DNA from: Epithemia pelagica | Taxonomy: Eukaryota > Protista > Bacillariophyta | Direction: 5' to 3' | Assembly: GCA_946965045.2 (NCBI GenBank) | Contig: OX337230.1 | Location: 372,001 to 436,000 of the forward strand | Length of the DNA stretch: 64,000 nucleotides | In this document: piece after piece, positions 6,492 through 43,328 of the stretch | How the letters are laid out: each line of letters starts with the position of its first letter | Position numbering within the stretch: the first letter of the stretch is position 1 | The notes under the pieces: generated by a model | Told to the model about the DNA's origin: nothing | Seen by the model: only the letters and a program-made list of their open reading frames with translations | Database searches by the model: none | Program-made: the position numbers and the translations under genes

Positions 6492-7619
6492 ATGAAAGTG
6501 AATGGCAAGCAATATCGCACGGTTTGGATGGAGGGCTCCACCGTCCATTTGATTGAACAAAATCTCTTGCCCTTTGAGTTTCGGATACACCAGTGCGAAA
6601 CCTACTTGGACACATGCCGAGCCATCAAAACCATGATTGTACGAGGTGCAGGCGCGATTGGAGCCACAGCCGGCTATGCCATGGCGCAAGCATTTGTAGA
6701 AGCTACGACTCTCTAGGAAACAACAACCGCTGGATCGGAAGAAGGAGAAGAACGTGACAGTGGCTTTCTTGAGTTTGCCACAAAGGCCAAACAAGACATT
6801 GAAAATACACGACCAACGGCACAGAACCTATTTTATGCGACCAGTCGAGTCTACAAGGCCGCCATGAACAGCAAAACTCCCGCACAGGATGCCCGAAAGG
6901 AAGCGCAGGCTGTTGCCGATGAAGATGCCGAGAATTGCAGATTGATTGGGGAATACGGCAAGCACCTCATCCAGGATGGAACGCGAGTTGAAACCCATTG
7001 TAATGCGGGCTGGTTAGCCTTTGTCGATCACGGAAGCGCCCTGTCACCGATTTATGCAGCTCGTGACGCGGGGCGTCAACAGATTCATGTCTGGGTGGAC
7101 GAAACAAGGCCTCGCAGTCAGGGTGCAAGACTTACGGCATGGGAACTCGAAAAGGAAGGTATATCCCATGCCATTCTTCCCGACAATGCCGGTGCCTTCT
7201 ACATGAATGAAGGAAAGGTTGATTTGTTGATTGTCGGCGCAGATCGGATTGCAGCCAATGGGGACGTGGCCAATAAAATTGGGACCTTGGAAAAAGCCAT
7301 TGCGGCTCATTACTTCGGCATACCGTTTTATGTCGCAGCCCCAACAAGTACCATTGACCTCAACTGTCCTTCGGGCAAGGACATTCCCATTGAACATCGA
7401 AGTCCGAATGAAGTCTTGTATCAAACCGGGCCTTCCCATAACATGAGCGACAACAACACTGCCATTGAGATGCATACGATTCGAGTGGCATCGCCTAATT
7501 CCTCCGCCGAAAATCCAGCCTTTGATGTGACTCCAGCAAAACTTGTCAAAGGTATAATTACCGAAAAAGGAATCATAGAGTCTCCGTCGACTGCGTCCAT
7601 TCGTAATCTACTTGGATGA
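6492..7619 (+). pseudogene. mtnA: Methylthioribose-1-phosphate isomerase (MtnA/MRI1, eIF-2B alpha/beta/delta family) with one in-frame TAG at 6714-6716
   Basis: ORFs 6492-6716 and 6864-7619 share a frame. Motifs present: IVRGAGAIG, TRPTAQNLF (in the segment between the two ORFs), HCNAG, WVDETRPRSQGARLTAWEL, VGADRIAANGDVANKIGT, NPAFDVTP. Status (pseudogene, allele or sequence error) is uncertain. Confidence 0.88.
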
Positions 7620-7736: not shown

Positions 7737-7809
7737 CTCCTCGTGTGGGGATCGAACCCACGACCTTAAGATTAACAGTCTCACGCTCTACCAACTGAGC
7801 TAACAAGGA
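7737..7809 (-). tRNA. tRNA-Asn (GTT)
   Basis: Minus strand reads TCCTTGT TA GCTC AGTTGGTA GAGC G TGAGA CTGTTAA TCTTA AGGTC GTGGG TTCGATC CCCAC ACGAGGA G. All four stems pair, the anticodon is GTT, and a T6 Pol III terminator follows (A run at 7729-7734). Confidence 0.97.
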
Positions 7810-26838: not shown

Positions 26839-26883
26839 CATTCGCTCTGTCGTTGTCACGTCCGTTGTTTTGTTCGGTGGAGT

Positions 26884-27641
26884 TGATAAACTTCTCTCGA
26901 TTCAACAGGGGTTAGACAGATAGGTAGGATAGGTAAAAGGCTCGCTGAGCCGACAATCGAATCACCAACCGATACAACAATCCTCCACGGGTCAGAGAAG
27001 AGTTGCAAGTCGAAGTCCGCCGTGGGTGGGGGCAGTCGGTCCACTGATAAGAGGTTAGTCTTAAGATGAGTGTTAAAATGGTGATATTAATGATTGTGAG
27101 ACGATTACTAACTAAGGTGGTTGATGGTGCCGAAGTCCTGGCTCTTGCATACGGCCATGGATCTGGTGTGATAGGTCCTCACTGGTTGGAGTAGACCGGC
27201 ATTGGTGTATATTGAATGTATAGGGTGATGGATAACATGTATGGGATGCAACAGCTCTTGCTTTGTCGTGGTATAAGTCTTGTCCTGGGCGCGTTGCTGT
27301 TTGCATTCTTGGATTTGTGGGAACAGAGATATGGTCTCGCGTGATCGTGATTCGTGCCTTGATTACATAGACCGTTAGGTCGAATCGTGGATGCGCGTAC
27401 TCGGATAGTAGAGGCGCGCACTTGATAGTTTTGGGCGCGCACGTGTTGGGCCATAGTTAATATCCGAGCGGTCGCCGATAACGCGTGCACTGCGAGCATG
27501 CCGTGGCCAAATTTATAGTTTCGCGAGCATGCCGACATTCTTTTCTCACTTTTAGGAAAATGTCATCGGATGCCATAGAAAACTAGCATCATTCGATGAG
27601 TTGTAGGTTTCGCCACCTAGTTTTCGGTGAGAATCCTAACA
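26884..27641 (-). repeat. 3' LTR of element A
   Basis: Matches 42377-43134 at constant offset 15493. Only two mismatches were seen by eye (TTTCGCCACC vs TTTGGCAACC). Confidence 0.97.
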
Positions 27642-29364
27642 CTCCCCACAATTCGTCGAATGAGGATTGTCAATTCCCTCATCACTTTCCTGGATTTTTC
27701 CTCTCCAGAATAACAAAGATCTGAGCATGGGCCAAACTGCGGCAAATTCCCAATGTTTACTGAGGATATCAGCTGGGTTTGTCTTTCCATCTTTCCAGTA
27801 GAATGCGACGTACTTTGCAGCGATAGCTTCACGGACTCGGTGATAGGATAGGAGATGGTGCCTCTTGGAGATGATTGAGTGTGGTGTGGTGCTATTGATA
27901 ACGACAGAGCGGTTATCCCCAAACATGTAACTCTTCTCTCGCAGAGGGACTCCCAAGTATCGGAGTGTAAGGCGTAGCTCCGTGATCTGATCAACTGCAG
28001 TCCTTGCGGCAACAAATTCAGATCCATACGCGGCTGTTTCCACTGTGGCTTGTCGCTTACTGTACCAGTCCACGGGTGTACCATTTACAAAATGCAGGAT
28101 AGCTGTAACTGCTTTCCCAGTAACCGTATCATGCATGAGATTTGCGTCGACATAATGTATAGTTGTCACAAAACGCCCAAGTGGGGTTGGGCAGTCCTCA
28201 GGGATACGTTCCTTGGCGTCCATGTATACGGTACGACTCCAATCGTATTCTTGGATAGGTAAAGCTGATAAATCTGGCTCCCCAGTGCGGAATCTGATAG
28301 ACCCATCAGGAAATGACATGAGGTATCCATAGATGCGTTTAGCTCGCTTCAAATGACCAATCCTTGGAGCAGCTCTGAACCTTGATAGAGTCATGGTAGC
28401 AGGAAAGACATCAAAACGGCCAATGGTAATTAGCCATTGCAGTTGTCCAATAAGAGTCTGGAAATGCTGGGTCCCTTCTTCATCTAAGAGCTCAGAGTCA
28501 TCGAGTTCAGGATGATCGTTAGCAATGACTGGCGGCTTTGCTTTCTTGGGTTTCTCATTGAACAATCGTTCATAGGTATCCATCATTTTCTCGATGTACC
28601 TTCGTGGGTCAGACACAAGTGTACCGTCTGGATCTTTGGTATAACGACACCCCAAATGATACTCGATAGGTCCGACTCCTTTGAGTTTGAAGTTGTATTT
28701 TTCTGTAAAGATCTTGCAGACAGCTTCAGGGTCCATGGCAACGATAGCTAAGTCATCAACATATACAGCGATATATTCATAACAGTCTTCTCCAGGAGCC
28801 TTCTTCATCCAAATATCAGGGTCAGCCTTGCTTGGAGAAAATCCCATATCAATGAGAACATCAAACAGTTTGTCATGCCAGCGAGCACCTGAGGATTTGA
28901 GACCATATAATGCCTTGTAGATGATCAAGATATGTCCTTCTAACTCCTTGAACTCTGGTCCTGCAATGATGAAAATCTTCTCTCCTGTCAATGCTTCTAG
29001 GTATGCGTTCCCAATATCTGCTCCCCATATTTCCATGTCGTTCATGGTTCCAAGAAATATGGCAATGCGAAGGTTGCGAATGGAGACAACCCCTGAATAG
29101 ATGGTCTCAACGGGTTCCTTGGTGAGATGTCCATCTGCGACAAGTCGTGCCTTGTGCCTTCCGTCATGCTTGACATCAAAGACCAGATGTACTCTTATCT
29201 TATGATATCCTTCTGGTGCATTGGCCAATTTTCCATTAATGAACTTGGCTTTTCCATGGTCCTTGAAAGTGTTATACGATTGGATCTGTGAGAGTTCCAA
29301 TTCTGTTGCGTCTTGCCATTTCGTGTTCCCAAATTGCTTGTCTAGTTCCACTGCTTCTTCATAG
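27636..29364 (-). pseudogene. RT-RNase H half of element A gag-pol
   Basis: ADIGNAYL, KALYGLKSSG, YVDDL, YVDANL, YGSEF and NPADILSK motifs. Ends CGEC-stop inside the LTR. Confidence 0.95.
27642..27650 (-). promoter_or_regulatory. Polypurine tract of element A (TGTGGGGAG)
   Basis: Abuts the TG start of the 3' LTR on the minus strand. Identical to the tract in element B. Confidence 0.8.
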
Positions 29365-29369
29365 GTGCG

Positions 29370-30152
29370 TGTTAGAATTCTCACCGTCTATGGTGGCTAG
29401 ATTCTACATCTCATCGATTCCCCATGTCACATAGCCTCGTGCTATCGCATCATGCCATCTAGCTTCGAGCTATGTTTCCTAGCTTCGCGCTATATCGACC
29501 TATATTTCTTCGCAAATCATGAAAAGTGAGAATAGATTGACGAACTCACTCTCAAGACTAAACTGGGTCGTGCGGTATTACAACGGACGTAAATTTGGCC
29601 GTTGCTCGGACATTATACTAACGCCCTAAGCGTACGCGCCCGAAATCATCGAGCGCGCCCAAGCGACATCCGAGCGCTATCGGAATCTATCCGACCCAAC
29701 GGTCTAAGTATCCCAAGCACGACACACGATCACGCGAGACCATATTTCCATTCCCACAATCTCCAAATTGTCAACAAGCTGCGCGCCATGAAAACAACTA
29801 TGCCAACCCAAAGCAAGAGCTGTTGACCCTGTATATGTTATCCGCCCACATATACATGTCATATACATCACATGAATCAACTCCAACTATTCCAAACCTG
29901 TTGCCGCCAAGAACCTATGACACATGACCCTTGGCAGGACCGAACATTTCACGTAGACCTATCGTAGTAATCAACACACAATCTAACAATATCACCATTT
30001 ATCACATCTTCTTTTGTGTCCCGACTATCCTTCTGATAGACTTCGACTTGCTTGCTTCTCTGACCCTGAGAAGCTTGTATCGGTTGGTGACCTACCTGAT
30101 TGTCTGCTCTACCGAGCATCAATGCCCCTACGATTCAGAAAGAATTGTAACA
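29370..30152 (+). repeat. 5' LTR of element B
   Basis: TGTTAGAATTCTCACC...AATTGTAACA. Matches 36533-37315 at offset 7163 with one mismatch seen (AGCTTCGCGC vs AGCTTTGCGC). Confidence 0.97.
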
Positions 30153-30166
30153 GATTAACAGTCTCA
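30153..30166 (+). promoter_or_regulatory. Primer-binding site of element B (complementary to tRNA-Asn positions 27-40)
   Basis: GATTAACAGTCTCA lies directly after the 5' LTR and is identical to plus-strand 7770-7783 within the tRNA-Asn gene. Confidence 0.85.
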
Positions 30167-30188
30167 AAGCTTATTTCCTTGTGGTTTC

Positions 30189-30530
30189 ATGGATACTAAC
30201 GAGATTATCACTCCTGTACGACAGATCTATCGAGCCAACCTGCATCCCGGGCAGCCCGATACCCTGGTGCAGCAGGAACTGGTGCCGACGCCGAAGGCAG
30301 CCAACACATCGGTCAACATCTCTGTACGCCTAGATAACTACGTTGCCTACATCCACGAGGTCCATACCATCGAGGACCATCGTGCAACTATCTACCCTTT
30401 GCGTACCGAGGTCGAGAACCACCTGGCTGAAGGTGATACCCCTTCTTCTGTTGCTTGTGCTGCCCCATCTGAGCCTGGAAGCGACTCTGATCATTCGGAA
30501 GAGGGTGAGGATTCGGAGACCGAAGCCTAA
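30189..30530 (+). CDS. Extra ORF (ORF0) upstream of gag in element B, 113 aa
   Basis: ATG-started and lies between PBS and gag. Shares the RLDxYVxxxHExHxxxDxRATIYPL...NHL motif with ORF0 of element A. Confidence 0.7.
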   Translation: MDTNEIITPVRQIYRANLHPGQPDTLVQQELVPTPKAANTSVNISVRLDNYVAYIHEVHTIEDHRATIYPLRTEVENHLAEGDTPSSVACAAPSEPGSDSDHSEEGEDSETEA

Positions 30531-30850
30531 TTACTCATAGTTAACTCCCGTCCTCTCAAAACCTTTCCAAGACTTAAACTCAACGCATATCCGGGTACCA
30601 TTGGTCGCACAACACGCCACACATTCCCGTCAAATCGCGAAAATTCGGCGAAAATTTGTTGAAACTCGGCGAAAATTTGTCGAAATCAACGGAAATTTCC
30701 AGGAGTCGCACATCACAACACACATCCGGGTATCACATACGTGGTACATACGTGGCACACGTGGTACATCCGGGTTCACATCACATCACACATTAAATAA
30801 ACCACATCACACCGCACATTAAATAAACATCGAACCAACCAAATAACACC

Positions 30851-33800
30851 ATGGATCCTCAATCACCCAAGACACCTACGACTCTTAAGGGAGAAGATAA
30901 CCAAGACAATGTCTCGGACACAGACCTATTCGACCACATCATATTTACTGTCTGCCAATTCTTCACCAAAGAAAGGGCCGACTACTTAATGAAGTGGATG
31001 AAATACCATGGTTTTGAGAACATTACCCATGATATCTCGTATATGCAAACTAATACCGAGGAATCCATGAAGGAACTGACACAATACAAGGTCAACAAAC
31101 AGACACATGATCTACAAGGCCCCACAAGACAGCAGATCAAGCTCTTGGCTTATTGGGCCACATACAAGACCAATGAAATTCAAGACGAGCTATCCAATAG
31201 CGACTGGATGAACCTAACGAGGAAAGAGTTCAACACTTGGAGGATCAACACAGATTTCTCTAAGGGACCACCTAGCCAAGTCCCAGTCTCGCCAATGAAG
31301 TCACCGTCATCTGTGAAATCTGTCAGCACAGTTACTGCCGCATCCCAATCTCAACAAGACCTTACAGCATTCAGAAAGGGAACTAAGCGTGACGCAACTG
31401 CATATGAGGTATTCAAGGATGAACGATACTACGATTCATTCTGGCGTGTATTCAAGACTACAGCTAAGGCTCAAGGCCTATCCAACGTTCTGAATTTCAA
31501 ATACACACCACCCCATGATGATGAGTATGCCGAAGAACTTTTTCAAGAGCAACAAGTATTTCTTTACTCCGTTCTTGTCCGTATCATTCAGACTGACCAA
31601 GGTCGAGCCTATGTACGTGAACATGAACATGATGAAGATGCGCGTGCCGTATTGCAGAAGTTACACTCTTTGCATACCGAATCCGACCTAGCAAAGCGAG
31701 AGGTCCTCCGCTTAACCAACTACATTTCCAATCTACGTCTTGACGACACATGGCGCGGAACAACACGTCAATTTCTTCTACACTTTCAAGAGCAGCTACG
31801 TTTGCTAGACAATTTAGTGACATTGTCTGATCGCATCCCTGATCATACCAGGATGACCTTCCTCATGCAAGCTGTAGAAAAGGTACCTGATCTCCGCCGA
31901 GTCAAGATCTTGGATAATGTGGTGAACACCAAATCCGGTGCAAAATCCCTTTGCTATCAATCATACTTCCGTCTCCTTCTAGACGCAGCTTATGACCATG
32001 ATCAAGCAACCCAGTCATCTGTTCATAGTCGCCGTCGACATGTCAAACAACATGAATCACTATATGGCCAAGATACAGATGCTGACATAACCTCACAAGA
32101 TGATATGGAGTATCATGTCCACAACACCAAAGCGACATCTGAATCTCCATCCTCTTCGTCCAAGGTTAGTCTACCGCGTGACCTATGGTTCAAACTTTCT
32201 GAAGAAGATCGCAAGTTGATCATTGAGTATAACAAGATGATTCAAGCACCTTCATCAACAACACCGAGGACAGTGCAAACACATGCCCTCGACATTGATC
32301 CGGAACCTGATCCTGACCCCAACCAAGTTGCATCTGATGACGACTCACCTGGCGTAGTCCCTGAGCATTCAGATGATTCAGATCCGGTTACACAATTTAT
32401 CAACCAAGCCATGACGACTGATATCAATCACCCGGCAACTGACCTGACTAGTGTTCTTTCTAACGCCAAGTCCAAGACGAGCAAGAAGGTTACTTTCAAA
32501 GCCAACATGCATAAACAAGCAGGACATGTTCCACGCTATTTGTTTTCCAGGAAATCTACTTTACCAGGGAATCAATTGATTGACCGTGGTGCTAATGGAG
32601 GACTTGCTGGTTCTGACATGCGCATCCTTTCTAAGACTGGCCGCCATATCACTATTGTGGGTATTGATAACCATGAACTTACTGGACTTCCTGTCGTCAC
32701 ATGTGCCGCAAAGTTTGAGACCAATGATGGACCTATTGTCGGCATCTTCAATGAATATGCTTATTATGGGAAGGGCTTATCTATCCATGCTCCTGGTCAA
32801 TTCGAGCATTTCGGACTTGCTGTTGATGAACGATCTCTTAAAGTTGATGGTAAACAACGCATCACTACACTTGATGGTCGTGCCATACCCCTTCACATCA
32901 AGGATGGGTTAGCCTACATCCACTCCTTGGGTATCCCCAGCGACGATGACATGGATACCTTACCTCAGATCATCTTCACGTCACCCGACACATGGGATCC
33001 TGGTGTTCTGGACCATTCGTATTCTCCCACACCCTCTGACAATGATCCTGATTGGAAACACGTCAACACTGATGGTAGTATGTCGAACCATCCATATGAC
33101 AACTATGGGGAGTACACTGATCGTGTTGTTTGTAACCTCAATCTCCTTTTGGATCTCCCATACGATCATGGACCTGACGACGCACCCTTCTTTTCTATCT
33201 ATGCTGACGCAGAAGGTAATGATCCTACACTTCATGCCTCTGTCCACCGTCGTTACCAGGAAGCGTATGACTGGAAGAAGTTCCGTCCATTCTTTGGTTG
33301 GCAATCTGAAGATGTTATTGCCGATACGTTCAAGCACACTACACGTAATGGTAGCATTACTTTTGACCACGACACCCTCAAGAAACATTTCAAGGCTCGC
33401 AATCCGGTCCTTAATATACCTCGACGCCATGAACCCGTTGCTACTGACTCGGTTTTCTCCGACACTCCTGCTGTTGACCATGGCGGTAAAGTCGCACAAA
33501 TCTTTGTTGGTCGAGATACTCTGGTTACTGATATCTATGGGATCAAGTCAACCAAACAGTTTGTCAATACTCTTCAGGACAACATCCGGTTTCGTGGTGC
33601 CATGGAGACTCTTATCAGTGATGGTGGTTCATCTCTCATCTCTCAAAAGGTTAAAGACATTCTTCGCACTTTGCTTATTGGGGAGTATCGATCCGAACCT
33701 TATCATCAACACCAGAATAAGGCTGAAAACCGTTACCAGACCGTTAAACGTATGACCAACGCTCTCATGAATGCCACTGGTTGCCCTGCCAACACCTGGC

Positions 33801-36538
33801 TTCTTTGCCTTGAGTATGTCTGTGACTTATTGAACCATACGTCATCACCCACCCACTCCGGTCGCACTCCTCTTGAGGCTCTCTCCGGACGCCCACCCGA
33901 CATTACTCATCTCTTGTTCTTTCCTTTCTGGGATGAGGTTTACTACCGTGTCGACCCCGCTGAACCCAATTCCGGTTCATATCCATCTTCTTCTGACGAG
34001 AAACTTGGCCACTGGGTTGGTTTTGCTCACAACGTTGGTGATTCTTTTACTTGGAAGATTCTCACCCAGGATAACCAGATCATCTACCGTTCTGCCGTTC
34101 GCCGTGTTGAATCCACTACACCTAACCTACGTGTGGATCGACCTTCAGGGGAGGATTCGTTTGAGAAGGATGACAATGATAAGCAAGCTGACACTGTCTT
34201 CATTCGCAGTGATAGTGAAGATCCATCCAAACCAATGCCCACGATCGATTTTGACGACATGATAGGACGCACATTCCTATGCGACACAGAAGAAAATGGG
34301 GAGCGACACCGTGCACGTGTCATCAAACGAGTCATTGATCTTAATGAAGAAGCAACGAAACAGGAAGAACGTGTCAAGTACATCTACCGAAAGACAAATT
34401 CTGATGTTGATGAGATGATATCCTATAATCAACTCATGGAGTATATCGAACGAGATAACCAAGCTCAAACCTCTGGAGATAATCTTTTCAGGTTCAGGGA
34501 CGTCATTGCCCATCAAGGCCCACTGAACACAACTGATCCAGATTACAAGGGGAGCAAATATAATTTGCTTGTTGATTGGGAAACTGGGGAGACTACCTAT
34601 GAACCTTTATCACTCATCGCCAATGATGATCCGATCACTGTAGCAATTTATGGAAAGAAACATGATTTACTCAACGAACCTGGATGGAAGCATTTGAAAC
34701 GTTATGTCAAAACAAGCAAACGTCTCATTCGAGCAGCCAAACAGTCAAGGATTAAACAAGTTCACCATTCCGTCAAGTATAAGTTTGGATTCCAAGTACC
34801 ACGCAATTATGAGGAAGCTGTCGCTCTTGATAAACAACATGGCAACACAAAGTGGCAGGATGCAACAGAATTAGAATTGTCACAGATCCAGTCCTACAAG
34901 ACATTCAAGGATTTTGGGAAAGCCATCTTCATTAAAGGGAAAGTATCCAATGCACCTGAAGGATATCATAAGATACGTGTACATCTTGTCTTTGACGTAA
35001 AACATGATGGACGACATAAAGCAAGACTTGTCGCAGATGGACATCTCACGAAAGAACCTGTTGAGACAATCTATTCAGGTGTTGTTTCCATTCGCAACCT
35101 CCGCATTGCCTTATTCCTGGGTACTTTGAATGACTTGGAAATATGGGGAGCAGATATTGGAAATGCATATCTGGAAGCCTTGACAGGGGAGAAAATTTTC
35201 ATTGTCGCAGGACCTGAATTCAAGGAATTAGAAGGTCACATCCTGATTATATACAAGGCACTTTATGGATTGAAGTCATCAGGCGCACGCTGGCATGATG
35301 TCTTATTCGATGTTTTGACAGACATGGGATTTTCACCAAGCAAAGCAGATCTGGATATCTGGATGAGGAAAGCACCTGGAGAAGACTGTTACGAATACAT
35401 TGCCGTATACGTTGATGACTTAGCCATTATTTCTACTGATCCTGGGAATATCTGCAAGATCCTAAAGGAGAAATACAACTTCAAACTCAAAGGAGATGGA
35501 CCTATTGATTTCCATTTGGGATGTTGTTACACCAAGGATTCTGATGGAACATTAGTAGCAGATCCAAGACGCTACATTGGTAAGATGATGGACACTTTCG
35601 AACGAATCTTCAAGGAGAAACCCAAGAAAGCCAAAACACCTCTTATTGGTGGAGACCATCCTGAATTGGATGATTCTGAGCTCCTTGATGAAGAAGGTAC
35701 TAGCCATTTCCAAACTCTGATTGGACAACTCCAATGGGTGATCACTATTGGTCGTTTCGACGTCTTCACCGCTACAATGACGCTATCACGCTTTCGCGCT
35801 GCTCCGAGGAAAGGACATCTTGATAGAGCCAAGCGTATCTATGGATACCTTGCACATCTCCCAGAAGGCGCAATCAGATTTAGGATTGGAGAGCCTGATT
35901 ATTCAAGTCTTCCTACCCAAGAATTTGATTGGACTCGCACTGTCTATTCGAATGCAAGTGAACGTATTCCTGAAGACTGCCCAACACCTCTTGGCCGCTA
36001 TGTTACCACAACTCATTATGTTGATGCCAATCTCATGCATGACATAGTCACTGGTAAATCCGTCACTGCTGTTCTACATTTGTTGAACGGAACACCTATT
36101 GACTGGTACAGCAAGAGACAGAGCACGGTGGAAACTGCTACCTATGGATCCGAGTTTGTGGCTGCAAGGACAGCAATAGATCAGATTACAGAATTACGAC
36201 ATTCTCTCCGCTACCTTGGAGTACCTATCCGAGAGCAAAGTTACATGTACGGAGATAACAGATCCGTTGTGCTCAATGCAACCGTTCCTCATTCCATACT
36301 ATCCAAGAGACACCATCTTCTGTCATACCACCGAGTTCGTGAAGCCATCGCAGCAAAGTATGTTGCATTCTACTGGAAAGATGGAAAGACCAACCCTGCC
36401 GATATCCTTAGCAAACATTGGGATTTCGTATCTATTTGGCCCATGCTCAAGCCATTGCTGTTTTGGAAAGGAGAAGTTCAAGATCTCAACAAATCCAATG
36501 ATGACAAGGCTGAAACGACGAGCTGTGGGGAGTGTTAG
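30851..36538 (+). CDS. Gag-Pol polyprotein of element B (gag, protease, integrase, RT, RNase H)
   Basis: Protease LIDRGANGG; integrase VATDSVF / LISDGG / KAENRY; RT ADIGNAYL and YVDDL; RNase H YVDANL, TYGSEF and NPADILSK. Confidence 0.97.
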   Translation: MDPQSPKTPTTLKGEDNQDNVSDTDLFDHIIFTVCQFFTKERADYLMKWMKYHGFENITHDISYMQTNTEESMKELTQYKVNKQTHDLQGPTRQQIKLLAYWATYKTNEIQDELSNSDWMNLTRKEFNTWRINTDFSKGPPSQVPVSPMKSPSSVKSVSTVTAASQSQQDLTAFRKGTKRDATAYEVFKDERYYDSFWRVFKTTAKAQGLSNVLNFKYTPPHDDEYAEELFQEQQVFLYSVLVRIIQTDQGRAYVREHEHDEDARAVLQKLHSLHTESDLAKREVLRLTNYISNLRLDDTWRGTTRQFLLHFQEQLRLLDNLVTLSDRIPDHTRMTFLMQAVEKVPDLRRVKILDNVVNTKSGAKSLCYQSYFRLLLDAAYDHDQATQSSVHSRRRHVKQHESLYGQDTDADITSQDDMEYHVHNTKATSESPSSSSKVSLPRDLWFKLSEEDRKLIIEYNKMIQAPSSTTPRTVQTHALDIDPEPDPDPNQVASDDDSPGVVPEHSDDSDPVTQFINQAMTTDINHPATDLTSVLSNAKSKTSKKVTFKANMHKQAGHVPRYLFSRKSTLPGNQLIDRGANGGLAGSDMRILSKTGRHITIVGIDNHELTGLPVVTCAAKFETNDGPIVGIFNEYAYYGKGLSIHAPGQFEHFGLAVDERSLKVDGKQRITTLDGRAIPLHIKDGLAYIHSLGIPSDDDMDTLPQIIFTSPDTWDPGVLDHSYSPTPSDNDPDWKHVNTDGSMSNHPYDNYGEYTDRVVCNLNLLLDLPYDHGPDDAPFFSIYADAEGNDPTLHASVHRRYQEAYDWKKFRPFFGWQSEDVIADTFKHTTRNGSITFDHDTLKKHFKARNPVLNIPRRHEPVATDSVFSDTPAVDHGGKVAQIFVGRDTLVTDIYGIKSTKQFVNTLQDNIRFRGAMETLISDGGSSLISQKVKDILRTLLIGEYRSEPYHQHQNKAENRYQTVKRMTNALMNATGCPANTWLLCLEYVCDLLNHTSSPTHSGRTPLEALSGRPPDITHLLFFPFWDEVYYRVDPAEPNSGSYPSSSDEKLGHWVGFAHNVGDSFTWKILTQDNQIIYRSAVRRVESTTPNLRVDRPSGEDSFEKDDNDKQADTVFIRSDSEDPSKPMPTIDFDDMIGRTFLCDTEENGERHRARVIKRVIDLNEEATKQEERVKYIYRKTNSDVDEMISYNQLMEYIERDNQAQTSGDNLFRFRDVIAHQGPLNTTDPDYKGSKYNLLVDWETGETTYEPLSLIANDDPITVAIYGKKHDLLNEPGWKHLKRYVKTSKRLIRAAKQSRIKQVHHSVKYKFGFQVPRNYEEAVALDKQHGNTKWQDATELELSQIQSYKTFKDFGKAIFIKGKVSNAPEGYHKIRVHLVFDVKHDGRHKARLVADGHLTKEPVETIYSGVVSIRNLRIALFLGTLNDLEIWGADIGNAYLEALTGEKIFIVAGPEFKELEGHILIIYKALYGLKSSGARWHDVLFDVLTDMGFSPSKADLDIWMRKAPGEDCYEYIAVYVDDLAIISTDPGNICKILKEKYNFKLKGDGPIDFHLGCCYTKDSDGTLVADPRRYIGKMMDTFERIFKEKPKKAKTPLIGGDHPELDDSELLDEEGTSHFQTLIGQLQWVITIGRFDVFTATMTLSRFRAAPRKGHLDRAKRIYGYLAHLPEGAIRFRIGEPDYSSLPTQEFDWTRTVYSNASERIPEDCPTPLGRYVTTTHYVDANLMHDIVTGKSVTAVLHLLNGTPIDWYSKRQSTVETATYGSEFVAARTAIDQITELRHSLRYLGVPIREQSYMYGDNRSVVLNATVPHSILSKRHHLLSYHRVREAIAAKYVAFYWKDGKTNPADILSKHWDFVSIWPMLKPLLFWKGEVQDLNKSNDDKAETTSCGEC
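36524..36532 (+). promoter_or_regulatory. Polypurine tract of element B (TGTGGGGAG)
   Basis: Immediately upstream of the 3' LTR start at 36533. Confidence 0.8.
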
Positions 36539-37315
36539 AATTCTCACCGTCTATGGTGGCTAGATTCTACATCTCATCGATTCCCCATGTCACATAGCCT
36601 CGTGCTATCGCATCATGCCATCTAGCTTCGAGCTATGTTTCCTAGCTTTGCGCTATATCGACCTATATTTCTTCGCAAATCATGAAAAGTGAGAATAGAT
36701 TGACGAACTCACTCTCAAGACTAAACTGGGTCGTGCGGTATTACAACGGACGTAAATTTGGCCGTTGCTCGGACATTATACTAACGCCCTAAGCGTACGC
36801 GCCCGAAATCATCGAGCGCGCCCAAGCGACATCCGAGCGCTATCGGAATCTATCCGACCCAACGGTCTAAGTATCCCAAGCACGACACACGATCACGCGA
36901 GACCATATTTCCATTCCCACAATCTCCAAATTGTCAACAAGCTGCGCGCCATGAAAACAACTATGCCAACCCAAAGCAAGAGCTGTTGACCCTGTATATG
37001 TTATCCGCCCACATATACATGTCATATACATCACATGAATCAACTCCAACTATTCCAAACCTGTTGCCGCCAAGAACCTATGACACATGACCCTTGGCAG
37101 GACCGAACATTTCACGTAGACCTATCGTAGTAATCAACACACAATCTAACAATATCACCATTTATCACATCTTCTTTTGTGTCCCGACTATCCTTCTGAT
37201 AGACTTCGACTTGCTTGCTTCTCTGACCCTGAGAAGCTTGTATCGGTTGGTGACCTACCTGATTGTCTGCTCTACCGAGCATCAATGCCCCTACGATTCA
37301 GAAAGAATTGTAACA
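36533..37315 (+). repeat. 3' LTR of element B
   Basis: Near-identical to 29370-30152 and followed by TSD GTGCG. Confidence 0.97.
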
Positions 37316-40300
37316 GTGCGAGGTACTTGGAAACCAAACTTGTACTTGATAGAGCGACGAACTTGTTTGATCCTGGATTGTTTAGCTGCTCGAATGAGTC
37401 TTTTGCTTGTCTTGACGTATCGCTTGAGATGTTTCCATCCAGGTAGATCCAGCAAACCATTTTTCTTGGCATAGATGGCGACTGTGATGGGGTCATCATT
37501 TGCAATAAGAGATAGAGGTTCGTATGTCGTCTCCCCAGTCTCCCAATCAACAAGGACATTATATTTACTCCCTTTATAGTCTGGGTCGCTTGAGTTCAAA
37601 GGTCCTTGGTGTGCAATAACGTCTCTGAATCGGAAGAGACTATCCCCTGTCGTTTGGGCTTGATTATCCCTTTCAATGTATTCCATGAGCTGGTTGTAGG
37701 AGATCATCTCATCAACATTGGAGTTAGACTTGCGAAAGATATATTTGAGTCGATCTTCTTGTTTGGTTGCATCTTGTTCCAGGTCGACAACTCGTTTGAT
37801 TACTCGTGCTCGGTGGCGCTCCCCATTCTCTTCAGTGTCACAAAGGAATGTGCGTCCAACTAAATCGTCGTAGTCAATTGTTGGCATAGGTGTGGATGGG
37901 TCTTCACTTCTGCTGCGAATAAAGACAGTGTCACCTTGCTTGTCAGTGGGTTTATGCGGCGACTCCTCCCCTGAAGAGATATCCACACGAAGGTTGGGGG
38001 TAGTGGAGGCAACGCGACGGACAGCGGAACGGTAGATGATGACGTTGTCGGCAGTGAGGATCTTCCAAGTAAAGGCATCACCAACATTGTGGGCAAAACC
38101 AACCCAGTGGCCAATCTTCTCGTCGGGAGACGAAGGGTAAGAACCGGAGGTAGGTTCAGAAGGGTCGACACGATAGTAGACCTCATCCCAGAAAGGAAAG
38201 AAAAGGAGATGGGTAATGTCGGGTGGGGTACCGGTAAGAGCCTCAAGAGGGGTGCGGCCAGAGTGGGTGGGAGAGGAAGTGTGATTGAGGAGGTCACACA
38301 CATATTCTAAACAAAGTAACCATGCAGAAGCAGGGCAACCAGAGGCATTCATGATAGCATTGGTCATACGCTTAACGGTCTGGTAGCGGTTCTCAGCTTT
38401 GTTCTGGTGTTGATGATAGGGCTCGGAACGGTATTCACCAATCAGAAGGGTGCGAAGAATATCCTTGACCTTGTGGGAAATAAGTGACGAACCACCATCA
38501 CTGATCAAAGTCTCCATGACACCACGTGTACGAATGTTATCCTGGAGGGTATTGACAAATTGCTTGGTAGACTTGATACCATAAATGTCAGTAACCAAAG
38601 TATCACGACCAACAAAAATCTGAGCAATCTTGCCACCATGGTTAACAGCCGGGGTGTCGGAGAAGATGGAGTCAGTGGCAACGGGTTCATGCCGTCGTGG
38701 TAGGTTAAGGATAGGATTCCGGGCCTTAAAGTGTTTCTTCAAGGTATCCTGGTCAAAGGAAATGTGTCCATGACGAGTTGTATGCTTGAACGTATCGGCG
38801 ATTACGTCTTCCGATTGCCACCCAAAGAAAGGGCGAAATTTCTTCCAGTCGTATTGTTCCTTGTAGAGTTTGTGGACAGACGCATGAAGTGTGGGGTCGT
38901 TGCCATCTTGATCAGCATAGATGGAAAAGAAGGAAGGTGTATCGGGGCCATGATCATATGGGAGATCAAGGAGGAGATTCAAAGTGCATACAATGCGATC
39001 GGTATACTCCCCATATTGGTCATAGGGGTACGTTTCCATACTACCATCAGTCTCCACAGATGTCCAGTTCGGTGCAGGGTCTTGATGGGGGTCTGGATGG
39101 GTATGGTCAAGTACAGAAGGATCCCAGATATGGGGTGAAGTGAACACAATATGCGGATATTTATCCATATCGTCATCAGAAGGGATTCCCAGAGATTGAA
39201 TGTATGCGAGGCCATCCTTGATTCGTAAGGGCAATGCACGTCCATCAAGGGTAGTAATGCGTTGTTTGCCATCAACCTTGACGGATCGTTCGTCGACAGA
39301 TAGGCCGAAATGTTCAAATTGCGCTGGGGCATGGATAGATAAACCCTTTCCATAATGGGCATACTCATTGAAGATACCAATAATGGGTCCATCACTTGTA
39401 TCAAACTTGGCAGCACAGGTAACAACTGGAAGGCCAGTCAATTCATGATTGTCAATACCTACGATGGTAATATGACGTCCGGTTTTGGCAAGGATACGCA
39501 TGTCAGATCCTGCAAGGCCTCCATTGGCACCTCGATCGATGAGTTGATTACCAGAAAAGGTGGATTTGCGGGAGAATAGATATCGTGACATATGAACCTT
39601 TTGCTTGTGATCGGCAGAAGACTTGAACTTGACTTTAGGACTTGACTTTGTCGTAGAAGTTGACAAGATGTTGCTGAGGTCAGATGCTGGATGATTGATA
39701 TCTGTCGATGCAATAGCCTGGTGTACAAACTGGGTAACCGGATCAGAGGATGTATCGAATGGATCTTGTTCTGGTGCATCTTGATGGGTATCACCAATGT
39801 TGTTGGCATCAGGATCAGGGTCCGGTTCAGGATCAATGTCAAGAGAATGTGTTTGGACCTTGCATGGAGTTGTCGGGGAATCTTGGACGGATTTATTGAA
39901 GTCGACAATGATTTGCCGATCCTCTTCAGAGAGTTTAAACCATACATCTCTTGGAAGGCTGATTTTTGACGAAGTTGGGGACTTTTCGGATTGGATATTC
40001 GTGTTGTTGATCTGGTAGTCAGGAGGCTCCACTGGTTCAAAAGGTTCATCCGACTGAAATTCATGTTGCTTTACATGACGACGGCGGTTAGACGCAGAAG
40101 TTCGGGTAGCTTGGTCATGGTCAAAAGCAGCATCAAGAAGCAGGCGGAAATATGATTGATAACAGAGAGACTTGGCTCCAGATTTTGTGTTGACAACGTT
40201 ATCCAAGATCTTGACTCGTCTTAAATCAGGTACCTTTTCAACAGCTTGCATAAGGAAGGTCATCCTTGTATGGTCATGGATACGATCCGACAGTGGTACA

Positions 40301-41268
40301 AGGTTATCCAGAAGTCGTAGCTGTTCTTGAAAATGTAGGAGAAACTGACGAGTTGTACCACGCCAAGAGTCATCCAGTCGAAGATTCGAAATGTAGCTTG
40401 TTAGGCGTAACACTTCTCGCTTAGCTAGATCAGATTCAGTGTGTAGAACATGGAGTTTCTTCAAGACGGCTCTTGCATCTTCATCGTGTTCATGTTCTCG
40501 AACATATGCTCTTCCTTGGTTGGTTTGGATAATACGTACAAGTACAGAATAGACAAAGACTTGTTGTTCTCGGAAAAGTAACTCTGCGCATTCGTCATCC
40601 TTGGGTACCTTGTAATCGAAATCAAGAACATTCGACAATCCTTGTGCTTTCGCAGTTGATTTGAATACACGCCAAAACGAATCAAAATATCGTTCGTCTT
40701 TGAATGATTCAAATGCTGTTGCATCTCTTTTGGTTCCTTTCTTGAAAGCAGAGAGATCTAACATGGATTGAGATGTTGTAGAGGATGTAGTGGGAGATCG
40801 GGATGATACGGAGTGTGCAGGTGATTTCAGAGGAGAAACTGGGTCTTGGTTCATACCAGACTTGGTAAAGTCGGTGTTGATCCTCCAATCGTCATATTGG
40901 TCCCTCGTGAGGTTCATCCATGTAGCACGGGGTAGTTTTCCATGTTGGAGTTGCCGTTGTTGTAGTAACCAATATGCCATTAGTTTGAGTTGTAATCTTG
41001 TACTTGTCTGTAGGTTGTTGACTTGTTTTCCAACCTTGTATTGCATGAGATCCTTGAGTGTCTCCTCGGGATCAGTTGCAACATGGTCGAGGACATGAAG
41101 GATATGTTCAAAACCATGATGTCGCATCCACTTTTGAAGTGATTGGGCTCGTTCATCATTACAACCAAAGATGCCTTTAGTTATATGGTCGAAGAGATCT
41201 TGATTGGTTATATGACTTGACTTGTCCTCAGAAGGAGTAAACGGTGTCTTGGGTGATTGAGGATCCAT
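37316..41268 (-). pseudogene. Gag-protease-integrase half of element A gag-pol
   Basis: Runs MDPQSPKTP...LIDRGANGG...LISDGG...KYKFGFQVPRT. Joining it to 29364-27636 gives 5682 bp, i.e. 1894 codons in frame (QVPRT|YEEAV). Confidence 0.95.
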
Positions 41269-41582
41269 GGTGTTATTTGGTTGGTTCGATGTTTATTTAA
41301 TGTGCGGTGTGATGTGGTTTATTTAATGTGTGATGTGATGTGAACCCGGATGTACCACGTGTGCCACGTATGTACCACGTATATGATACCCGGATGTGTG
41401 TTGTGATGTGCGACTCCTGGAAATTTCCGTTGATTCCGACAAATTTTCGCCGAGTTTCAACAAATTTTCGCCGAATTTTCGCGATTTGACGGGAATGTGT
41501 GGCGTGTTGTGCGACCAAGGCTACCCGGATGTGCGGAACTCGGTCTTGTGTCTGGTTTGGTGTAGAAACTACGTAAAGTTAC

Positions 41583-42338
41583 TTATTCTTGGTCACTTTC
41601 GGCTCGGTACTGAAGACGAGATGCGGAATCGGTCACTGTAGTGGCTAGTTCTTCAACGTCGTCGTCTTCCAACAAGTGGTTCACGTGTTGAGTGAAGAGA
41701 GGGTAGATAGTCGCACGGAAATCCTGGCAGAGATGGATCTCGTGAACAAAGGAGACGTACTCGTCGAGACGAGTAGTCGGGGTAGGTAACGGATTCGACG
41801 TCGAGTTGACGATCCAGATGGTGTGGAAGTAGTTGGTTGGACGTTCAAAGGAGATGAACCGAATACGGATGGGTTCCACAGGGTTGCCCAACAGGGCTTG
41901 GACAATGAAACGGCGTCTCGAGCACTGGTTCAAGAGGTCGAGAAGTCGTTGGATGTCCTCAAGGTCAGTCACGGGTTGGACGGACTGGAAATCGATCTCG
42001 CGTTCGGTTGTGGAACGGATCACGTCGGGGTCGGTAGTCGACTCAGTCGGCTCGCGGAAGTGTCGGATATGCGCAGTAAGAAGACGGCTCGTACGTCGGG
42101 TGCGAGTAGGGTTCAAACGGCGAGGCGGAGTCGAAGGTTGAGTCGGGATCGAAGGAGGCTGGACCACTTGGTCCGGGGTCTGGAAGGGATTCGGAGCACT
42201 GGCCTGAGTCGGGGTCGGTTTCGGAGTTTCAATCAAGGGCTCGCCCGGATGGGCCACGGGTGGATGGAGTTCCTCCCCGCTTTGTTGGAAGGAATGAAAG
42301 ATGTGTCGAATAGAGAGGTTGGAATCGTCGTGAGACAT
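41583..42338 (-). CDS. Extra ORF (ORF0) upstream of gag in element A, 251 aa
   Basis: ATG at 42338, just past the PBS. Pro/Thr-rich middle, then RLDEYVSFVHEIHLCQDFRATIYPLFTQHVNHL, homologous to ORF0 of B. Confidence 0.72.
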   Translation of the reverse strand: MSHDDSNLSIRHIFHSFQQSGEELHPPVAHPGEPLIETPKPTPTQASAPNPFQTPDQVVQPPSIPTQPSTPPRRLNPTRTRRTSRLLTAHIRHFREPTESTTDPDVIRSTTEREIDFQSVQPVTDLEDIQRLLDLLNQCSRRRFIVQALLGNPVEPIRIRFISFERPTNYFHTIWIVNSTSNPLPTPTTRLDEYVSFVHEIHLCQDFRATIYPLFTQHVNHLLEDDDVEELATTVTDSASRLQYRAESDQE

Positions 42339-42362
42339 CGAAAGCTTCTCGGAAATAAACGA

Positions 42363-42376
42363 TGAGACTGTTAATC
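42363..42376 (-). promoter_or_regulatory. Primer-binding site of element A (tRNA-Asn anticodon arm)
   Basis: Plus strand TGAGACTGTTAATC, i.e. GATTAACAGTCTCA in element sense, abutting the 5' LTR end at 42377. Confidence 0.85.
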
Positions 42377-43134
42377 TGATAAACTTCTCTCGATTCAACA
42401 GGGGTTAGACAGATAGGTAGGATAGGTAAAAGGCTCGCTGAGCCGACAATCGAATCACCAACCGATACAACAATCCTCCACGGGTCAGAGAAGAGTTGCA
42501 AGTCGAAGTCCGCCGTGGGTGGGGGCAGTCGGTCCACTGATAAGAGGTTAGTCTTAAGATGAGTGTTAAAATGGTGATATTAATGATTGTGAGACGATTA
42601 CTAACTAAGGTGGTTGATGGTGCCGAAGTCCTGGCTCTTGCATACGGCCATGGATCTGGTGTGATAGGTCCTCACTGGTTGGAGTAGACCGGCATTGGTG
42701 TATATTGAATGTATAGGGTGATGGATAACATGTATGGGATGCAACAGCTCTTGCTTTGTCGTGGTATAAGTCTTGTCCTGGGCGCGTTGCTGTTTGCATT
42801 CTTGGATTTGTGGGAACAGAGATATGGTCTCGCGTGATCGTGATTCGTGCCTTGATTACATAGACCGTTAGGTCGAATCGTGGATGCGCGTACTCGGATA
42901 GTAGAGGCGCGCACTTGATAGTTTTGGGCGCGCACGTGTTGGGCCATAGTTAATATCCGAGCGGTCGCCGATAACGCGTGCACTGCGAGCATGCCGTGGC
43001 CAAATTTATAGTTTCGCGAGCATGCCGACATTCTTTTCTCACTTTTAGGAAAATGTCATCGGATGCCATAGAAAACTAGCATCATTCGATGAGTTGTAGG
43101 TTTGGCAACCTAGTTTTCGGTGAGAATCCTAACA
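42377..43134 (-). repeat. 5' LTR of element A
   Basis: Near-identical to 26884-27641 and followed by TSD GGAGT. Confidence 0.97.
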
Positions 43135-43138
43135 GGAG

Positions 43139-43328
43139 TCGATTGTTGCGTTCGTCTCATTTCGTTCAAGCGAGAAGTTGATTGTTGCGTTCAGACCTCC
43201 AAACGGACGAGGATTTGATTATAGCCTTGAGACGAGCAGCTGATTGTGGTGGACAACAAGAGAATTGGTGCGTTTGGACAACGATTTGAGTTTGGAAGCC
43301 GTTTGAGAAGAGAGTTGATTGTTGTGTT
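43139..43328. repeat. Right part of the AGTTGATTGTTG motif array
   Basis: Copies at about 43139 (variant), 43176 and 43313. Confidence 0.65.

Follow-up and report, generated by a model that had tools for sequence, protein, structure and literature searches.

In the hemiviruses copia, 1731, Ty5 and Osser, nucleotide 40 of the tRNA primer, in the anticodon stem-loop, provides the 3'-OH from which cDNA synthesis begins (PMC1181622). These elements, found in Drosophila (copia and 1731), yeast (Ty5) and Volvox (Osser), use half of the initiator tRNA-Met. [quoted passage not shown] Initiator tRNA-Met is not a strict requirement, as later surveys accept other tRNAs for half-tRNA priming (PMC6317226, PMC10886601). 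Candida LTR families were predicted to use half-tRNA priming with tRNA-Arg(UCU) (PMC4139406), the PBS of the fungal element FunCo1 complements an internal region of tRNA-Lys (PMC5445492), and the plant Bianca lineage is assigned half tRNA-Ile with inosine-34 (Neumann 2019, PMC6317226). In Puccinia, Copia and Helenus elements (Helenus TRIMs) have anticodon-loop PBSs for which 3'-truncated elongator primers, Tyr and Ile, were predicted, and tRNA-Asn-GTT was named for Helenus (Kojima 2024, PMC10886601); the text of that paper is inconsistent on the last point, with Asp written twice and Asn-GTT once (PMC10886601). The preliminary description of the present locus took half-tRNA priming by an elongator tRNA to be undescribed, which is incorrect, since it had already been predicted for Arg, Ile, Lys, Tyr and even tRNA-Asn-GTT. 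It also proposed checking the literature on the PBSs of CoDi elements. The founding paper on these diatom Copia elements reports stress-activated transcription and mentions neither PBS nor tRNA (Maumus 2009, PMC2806351), and we found no report of half-tRNA priming in diatoms in the literature.

The DNA analysed here (the window) is a 64,000-nt stretch of the Epithemia pelagica genome. Repeat analysis followed by boundary extension identified two complete LTR elements in it. Element A lies on the plus strand between two copies of the TSD GTGCG (29365-29369 on the left, 37316-37320 on the right). Its 783-bp 5' LTR (29370-30152) has TG..CA ends and is followed by a 14-nt PBS (30153-30166), by ORF2 encoding an 1895-aa polyprotein (30851-36538; RVT_2 at residues 1365-1584), by the polypurine tract GGGGAG (36527-36532) and, directly abutting it, by the 3' LTR (36533-37315), which ends in CA next to the right TSD copy. 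Element B, on the minus strand, is flanked by the TSD GGAGT (43135-43139 and 26879-26883) and has a 758-bp TG..CA 5' LTR (42377-43134), the identical 14-nt PBS (42363-42376) and a TG..CA 3' LTR (26884-27641), preceded on the element strand by the polypurine tract GTGGGGAG (27642-27649). A GGGGAG polypurine run thus stands before the 3' LTR in both elements. Element A (29365-37320 including the TSD) is nested in the pol of element B (26884-43134) and splits ORF2 of B into a first part with 1333 aa open (41292-37294, minus strand) and a 582-aa remainder beyond the nested element, which contains RVT_2 (29387-27642, minus strand). The Copia-type reverse transcriptase match RVT_2 was clear in both (E = 2e-25 in A, 4e-25 in B); the integrase domain rve gave only a sub-threshold match in element A (E = 0.046), which lies ahead of RVT_2, around residues 900-950. 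The LTR pairs are 99.6% identical in A and 99.7% identical in B. The best explanation of these features is that A and B are Ty1/copia LTR retrotransposons of the predicted half-tRNA-primed, hemivirus-like kind.

Two further observations concern the coding regions. Element A lacks 438 nt of ORF1 at 30322/30323, a stretch that is present in another copy of the family (L005) and in metagenome contigs, and its ORF1 is shortened to 123 codons despite the 99.6% LTR identity. A 293-nt patch (30584-30876 in A, 41243-41535 in B) is 98% identical between the two elements, which elsewhere are 75-79% identical; this patch may reflect recombination or template switching between the families.

The PBS sequence, GATTAACAGTCTCA, occurs three times in the window: at 30153-30166 (+), at 42363-42376 (-) and at 7770-7783 (+). 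Allowing up to one mismatch, the window still holds 3 matches, compared to 0.03 expected from shuffles. In both elements the 14-mer begins at the first base past the LTR-terminal CA, and the third match falls within the only tRNA gene that ARAGORN detected in the window, a minus-strand tRNA-Asn(GTT) gene (7737-7809; anticodon at position 34) that scores 68.7 bits with the Rfam tRNA model (C3:379737-379809). This gene, the proposed primer donor, has a T-run downstream. Its D loop is 8 nt long, so that linear numbering equals standard numbering and window positions 7783 to 7770, read on the minus strand, are tRNA positions 27 to 40. The PBS is the exact complement of these 14 positions, which run from the 5' strand of the anticodon stem through the loop CTGTTAA and two bases into the 3' strand. 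The LTR boundaries and the ARAGORN prediction therefore both agree with the placement of the 14-mer, and with its tRNA-Asn match, in the preliminary description. Genome-wide, only two tRNA-Asn genes have such an anticodon arm. The exon next to the tRNA gene (6864-7619) encodes an MtnA-type isomerase of the IF-2B family that is 65-70% identical to proteins labelled bacterial or archaeal.

A search of the genome (60.5 Mb in 23 contigs) yielded 292 exact copies of the 14-mer, two of them in the context of a tRNA-Asn gene, while the reversed 14-mer used as control yielded none; sites with one mismatch added 19 (3 for the control). Family A, defined by up to three mismatches over 41 nt, accounted for 138 sites; among the matches listed, all 100 were identical, and at least 50 copies retain an intact 1903-aa frame. 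Many of the roughly 290 copies are very young. Because family A is so young, its copies of the 14-mer are not independent evidence, and it is the diversity of flanking sequences that counts instead. We sampled the flanks of the first 30 sites; as these were picked by exact match to the 14-mer, the sample alone cannot show conservation. An LTR-like TA, CA or GA end preceded the site in 28 of the 30, and these ends represented at least seven flank families; one of the other two sites was the second tRNA-Asn gene and one (L013), after ...TGAC, was left unclassified. The base 3' of the 14-mer varied among A, T and C in the sampled sites, indicating that complementarity ends at tRNA position 27. 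When the 1.5 kb following the site were compared at the nucleotide and translated levels, 27 sampled Asn loci formed one related super-family, and L003, L009 and L028 formed a second, weakly related Asn group.

Assembled contigs from seven studies (marine sediment, biofilm and seawater metagenomes, and 'organism A') could be aligned on 29800-30600. They carried variants in U5 and in ORF1 and none at 30126-30203; contigs of the B type overlapped element A only at 30141-30178. These contigs lend the proposal weak support. At two places in the genome, Asn-type sites occurred three in a row at regular spacing, about 1755 nt at G000:C3:3282827-3286349 and 10510 nt at G000:C6:1680564-1701624. Tandem arrays or short non-autonomous elements may underlie this spacing.

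The site was also present outside this genome. Assembly ERZ25042306 contains a large family, and its polyprotein shows no more than 65% identity to anything in the Epithemia pelagica genome, which places the family in another organism. In three elements of this family the site abuts the element's own LTR, whose terminal bases are GTATCA; two of these sites are exact and one has a one-base insertion. ERZ21939226, probably of the same species, has a 99%-identical protein and likewise contains the site. The nearest relative in a named assembly, a polyprotein with 51% identity, is encoded by a contig of GCA_002217885.1 (which we take to be Fistulifera solaris) that opens with GATTAACAGTCGCA. This sequence differs from the 14-mer by one base, opposite tRNA nucleotide 29. 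A metagenome scan for GATTAACAGTCGCA returned 81 matches at 80 loci. Of these, 28 matches lay in tRNA-Asn(GTT) genes with the arm TGCGA-CTGTTAA-TCGC, a widespread arm to which GATTAACAGTCGCA is complementary, and several others followed LTR-like ends on contigs encoding relatives of the element A polyprotein (33-56% identity over the aligned parts). GATTAACAGTCGCA was absent from the Epithemia pelagica genome, whose tRNA-Asn has A29. Such a distribution would be expected if the site follows the tRNA-Asn of the host, and it is suggestive of such tracking, short of proof. More distant polyproteins (40-49% identity; L086-L090, from metagenome and Logan contigs) showed neither an Asn-type nor an Ile-type loop motif on their contigs, some of which are collapsed, circularly permuted single-LTR assemblies in which LTR ends cannot be placed.

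A second class of sites matched another tRNA over the same positions. The genome contains a nuclear tRNA-Ile(AAT) gene and about 250 copies of GTTTATCAGACCCA (for example at G000:C3:3672005-3672018, and at loci L052-L081), which complements positions 27-40 of tRNA-Ile(AAU) and carries a C opposite A34. The version with T opposite A34 was found in only two places among the sites listed, one of which is a confirmed tRNA-Ile gene. A C opposite position 34 is what an inosine template calls for, so that the Ile-type site mirrors the mature, edited tRNA. The C-type sites are preceded by a wide range of LTR ends and followed by a base that is not conserved. The footprint, positions 27-40, is therefore common to the Asn and Ile classes. 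In comparisons of the gag region, groups resembled only those of their own primer type, Asn with Asn and Ile with Ile, which indicates that primer type is a lineage trait, as it is in plants. The motif AGACTC was noted 0-2 nt after the PBS in L003, L028, the L054 group, L094, L102 and L161, loci with different tRNAs and from different organisms.

The Ile class also bears on the length of the paired region. The preliminary description had extended the match to 15 nt by including the LTR-terminal A. The match of this A to U41 of tRNA-Asn is real, but it probably does not belong to the primer duplex. The same A also ends the 3' LTR of elements A and B, so it is copied as DNA, which sets it outside the primer. 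The base before the Ile-type site is A in 20 of 30 cases, a mismatch to C41 of tRNA-Ile, and G, a match, in the other 10; in those 20 sites pairing starts at position 40. The fifteenth matching base is thus probably coincidental and outside the primer duplex.

We searched for other ways in which A and B might be primed. The preliminary description noted the lack of a TGG start, and no TGG was present within 30 nt of either LTR end, which leaves no place for canonical priming from a tRNA 3' end; the tRNA survey of the genome scored 63 of 1840 candidates, and many of those 63 were organellar. A bipartite PBS in the style of Ty1 or Ty3 was not supported, as the LTR together with 400 nt showed, in either element, no more than chance pairing with tRNA-Asn positions 1-26. 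Unlike in the classical hemivirus members, the tRNA matched by the site is tRNA-Asn(GTT) and not the initiator tRNA-Met. Self-priming in the manner of Tf1 (TAR-like), in which the PBS would pair with the beginning of the element's transcript inside the LTR, was examined by comparing the 40 nt after each LTR with the element's own LTR. The longest complement was 8 nt in A and shorter than 7 nt in B, no better than in shuffled sequence, and never involved the 14-mer. The better match to self-priming LTR sequence that had been named as potential counter-evidence was thus not found, and we consider this mode of priming extremely improbable. The same low probability applies to a tRNA match by chance: about 45 tRNA species with one fixed footprint give an expectation of ~2e-7 per 14-mer, and many families as well as a second organism share the site, beside which a parallel tRNA-Ile class exists.

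Two further readings accept the match to tRNA-Asn. The 14-mer might be kept for a different role, as a packaging or dimerisation signal or as the target of tRNA-derived small RNAs, with the real primer being something else. Conservation alone cannot separate such functions from priming, and the presence of AGACTC close behind the site in several lineages shows that further signals do reside in this region. Yet the position, the length and the tRNA footprint of the site equal those of experimentally defined hemivirus PBSs (PMC1181622), the second class matches tRNA-Ile over the same positions and records inosine-34, and no alternative primer site, neither a TGG nor a self-complement, is available to take over priming. 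We judge a separate role to be very unlikely. Only somewhat less unlikely, in our view, is a supply of primers from stress-induced tRNA halves, which would couple transposition to stress-triggered tRNA cleavage, a link drawn in the preliminary description. Nothing in our data supports this link. In stress-type tRNA halves the break lies in the anticodon loop, but the primer would need a 3' end at position 40, which lies in the stem. Moreover, tRNA-Asn and tRNA-Ile would share the position of the cut, which points to a structure-specific cut rather than to an anticodon-loop nuclease, and the corresponding cut for copia and Ty5 has been attributed to RNase P-type internal cleavage (Ty3 review, PMC5371799). 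Transcription of diatom Copia elements is stress-activated, but as the study reporting this contains nothing on PBS or tRNA (Maumus 2009), we did not count it as support for stress halves.

We consider it very likely that A and B are primed by a 5' fragment of tRNA-Asn through positions 27-40, in the manner of copia and Ty5. As far as the sequence can tell, this central claim of the preliminary description holds up: the complementarity and its position directly after the LTR were observed directly, as were the breadth of the site across many LTR families and a second organism, the lack of alternatives and the same footprint on tRNA-Ile. The footprint itself agrees with the start of hemivirus cDNA at the 3'-OH of nucleotide 40 (PMC1181622). 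Under the proposed mechanism, the 14 nt directly 3' of U5 would pair with positions 27-40 of the mature cytoplasmic tRNA-Asn(GUU). The primer would be the 5' fragment 1-40, released by a cut in the 3' strand of the anticodon stem that separates nucleotides 40 and 41. The 3'-OH of this fragment would then be extended into U5 by reverse transcriptase, and the first base added would be the T opposite the LTR-terminal A. From the observations above we infer not only priming itself but also the cut site, the kind of nuclease and a role for modification of G26.

This last role could account for the length of the site. Both tRNA-Asn and tRNA-Ile have G10-C25, C11-G24 and a 5-nt variable loop, and these three features are the determinants of m2,2G26. 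The m2,2G modification neither pairs nor lets reverse transcriptase pass, comparable to m1A58, which sets the 18-nt site of retroviruses. G26, if it is m2,2G as we suppose, would take no part in pairing and would stop reverse transcriptase, so that plus-strand strong-stop synthesis would copy back only 14 nt of the primer. The site is probably 14 nt long because G26 is m2,2G. One point speaks against priming by tRNA-Asn: t6A37 and queuosine-34, both expected in this tRNA, would fall inside the primer duplex, as is likewise the case for the initiator tRNA in copia and Ty5.

Standard LTR annotation tools seek only tRNA 3' ends and would label elements of the A and B type as lacking a PBS, even though in this diatom they are abundant, young and apparently active. 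Primer type offers a simple marker for two large lineages, as one 14-mer identifies the Asn and another the Ile class. A family with at least 50 copies of an intact 1903-aa frame is also a usable system in which to find the nuclease that makes the cut. A broader idea, which we regard as unlikely, is that several elongator tRNAs, Asn and Ile at the least, undergo a structure-specific cut after nucleotide 40, and that this cut feeds entire Copia lineages, ~540 sites in 60 Mb. If such a cut were regulated, for example by nutrient stress or stress of another kind, tRNA processing would gate retrotransposition bursts in diatoms, and the 5' fragments could also serve as small-RNA regulators of these elements.

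The general picture of retrotransposon priming is unchanged by these elements and is extended to another eukaryotic group. The hemivirus geometry, with the primer 3' end at nucleotide 40 and the end of the site at position 27, appears to hold whichever tRNA is used. Hemiviruses use initiator tRNA-Met, whereas A and B are predicted, from sequence alone, to use the elongator tRNA-Asn(GUU). The Candida families and FunCo1 resemble A and B in having a PBS directed against an internal region of an elongator tRNA, with other tRNAs and in other hosts (PMC4139406, PMC5445492); the FunCo1 site ATTAAGAGTCT and the core of the A and B site are identical but for a single base, opposite anticodon position 34. 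Bianca resembles the ~250 Ile sites found here, in that an elongator half-tRNA is used and the PBS reads the edited base (PMC6317226), and differs from A and B in its tRNA and its plant host. In Puccinia, internal regions of Helenus elements open with a 14-nt iMet site, the same length as the A and B site (PMC10886601), and the internal region of Helenus-3_PGr (supplementary consensus) opens with C followed by GATTAACAGTCGA, a tRNA-Asn-type site that has 12 of its 14 bases in common with A and B (PMC10886601). The Puccinia Asn case concerns rust fungi and mostly non-autonomous elements, in contrast to the autonomous Copia elements with ~290 sites in the diatom-like alga described here. Earlier predictions thus cover the priming mode and even the tRNA; the new aspects are the host group, the autonomy of the elements and the scale.
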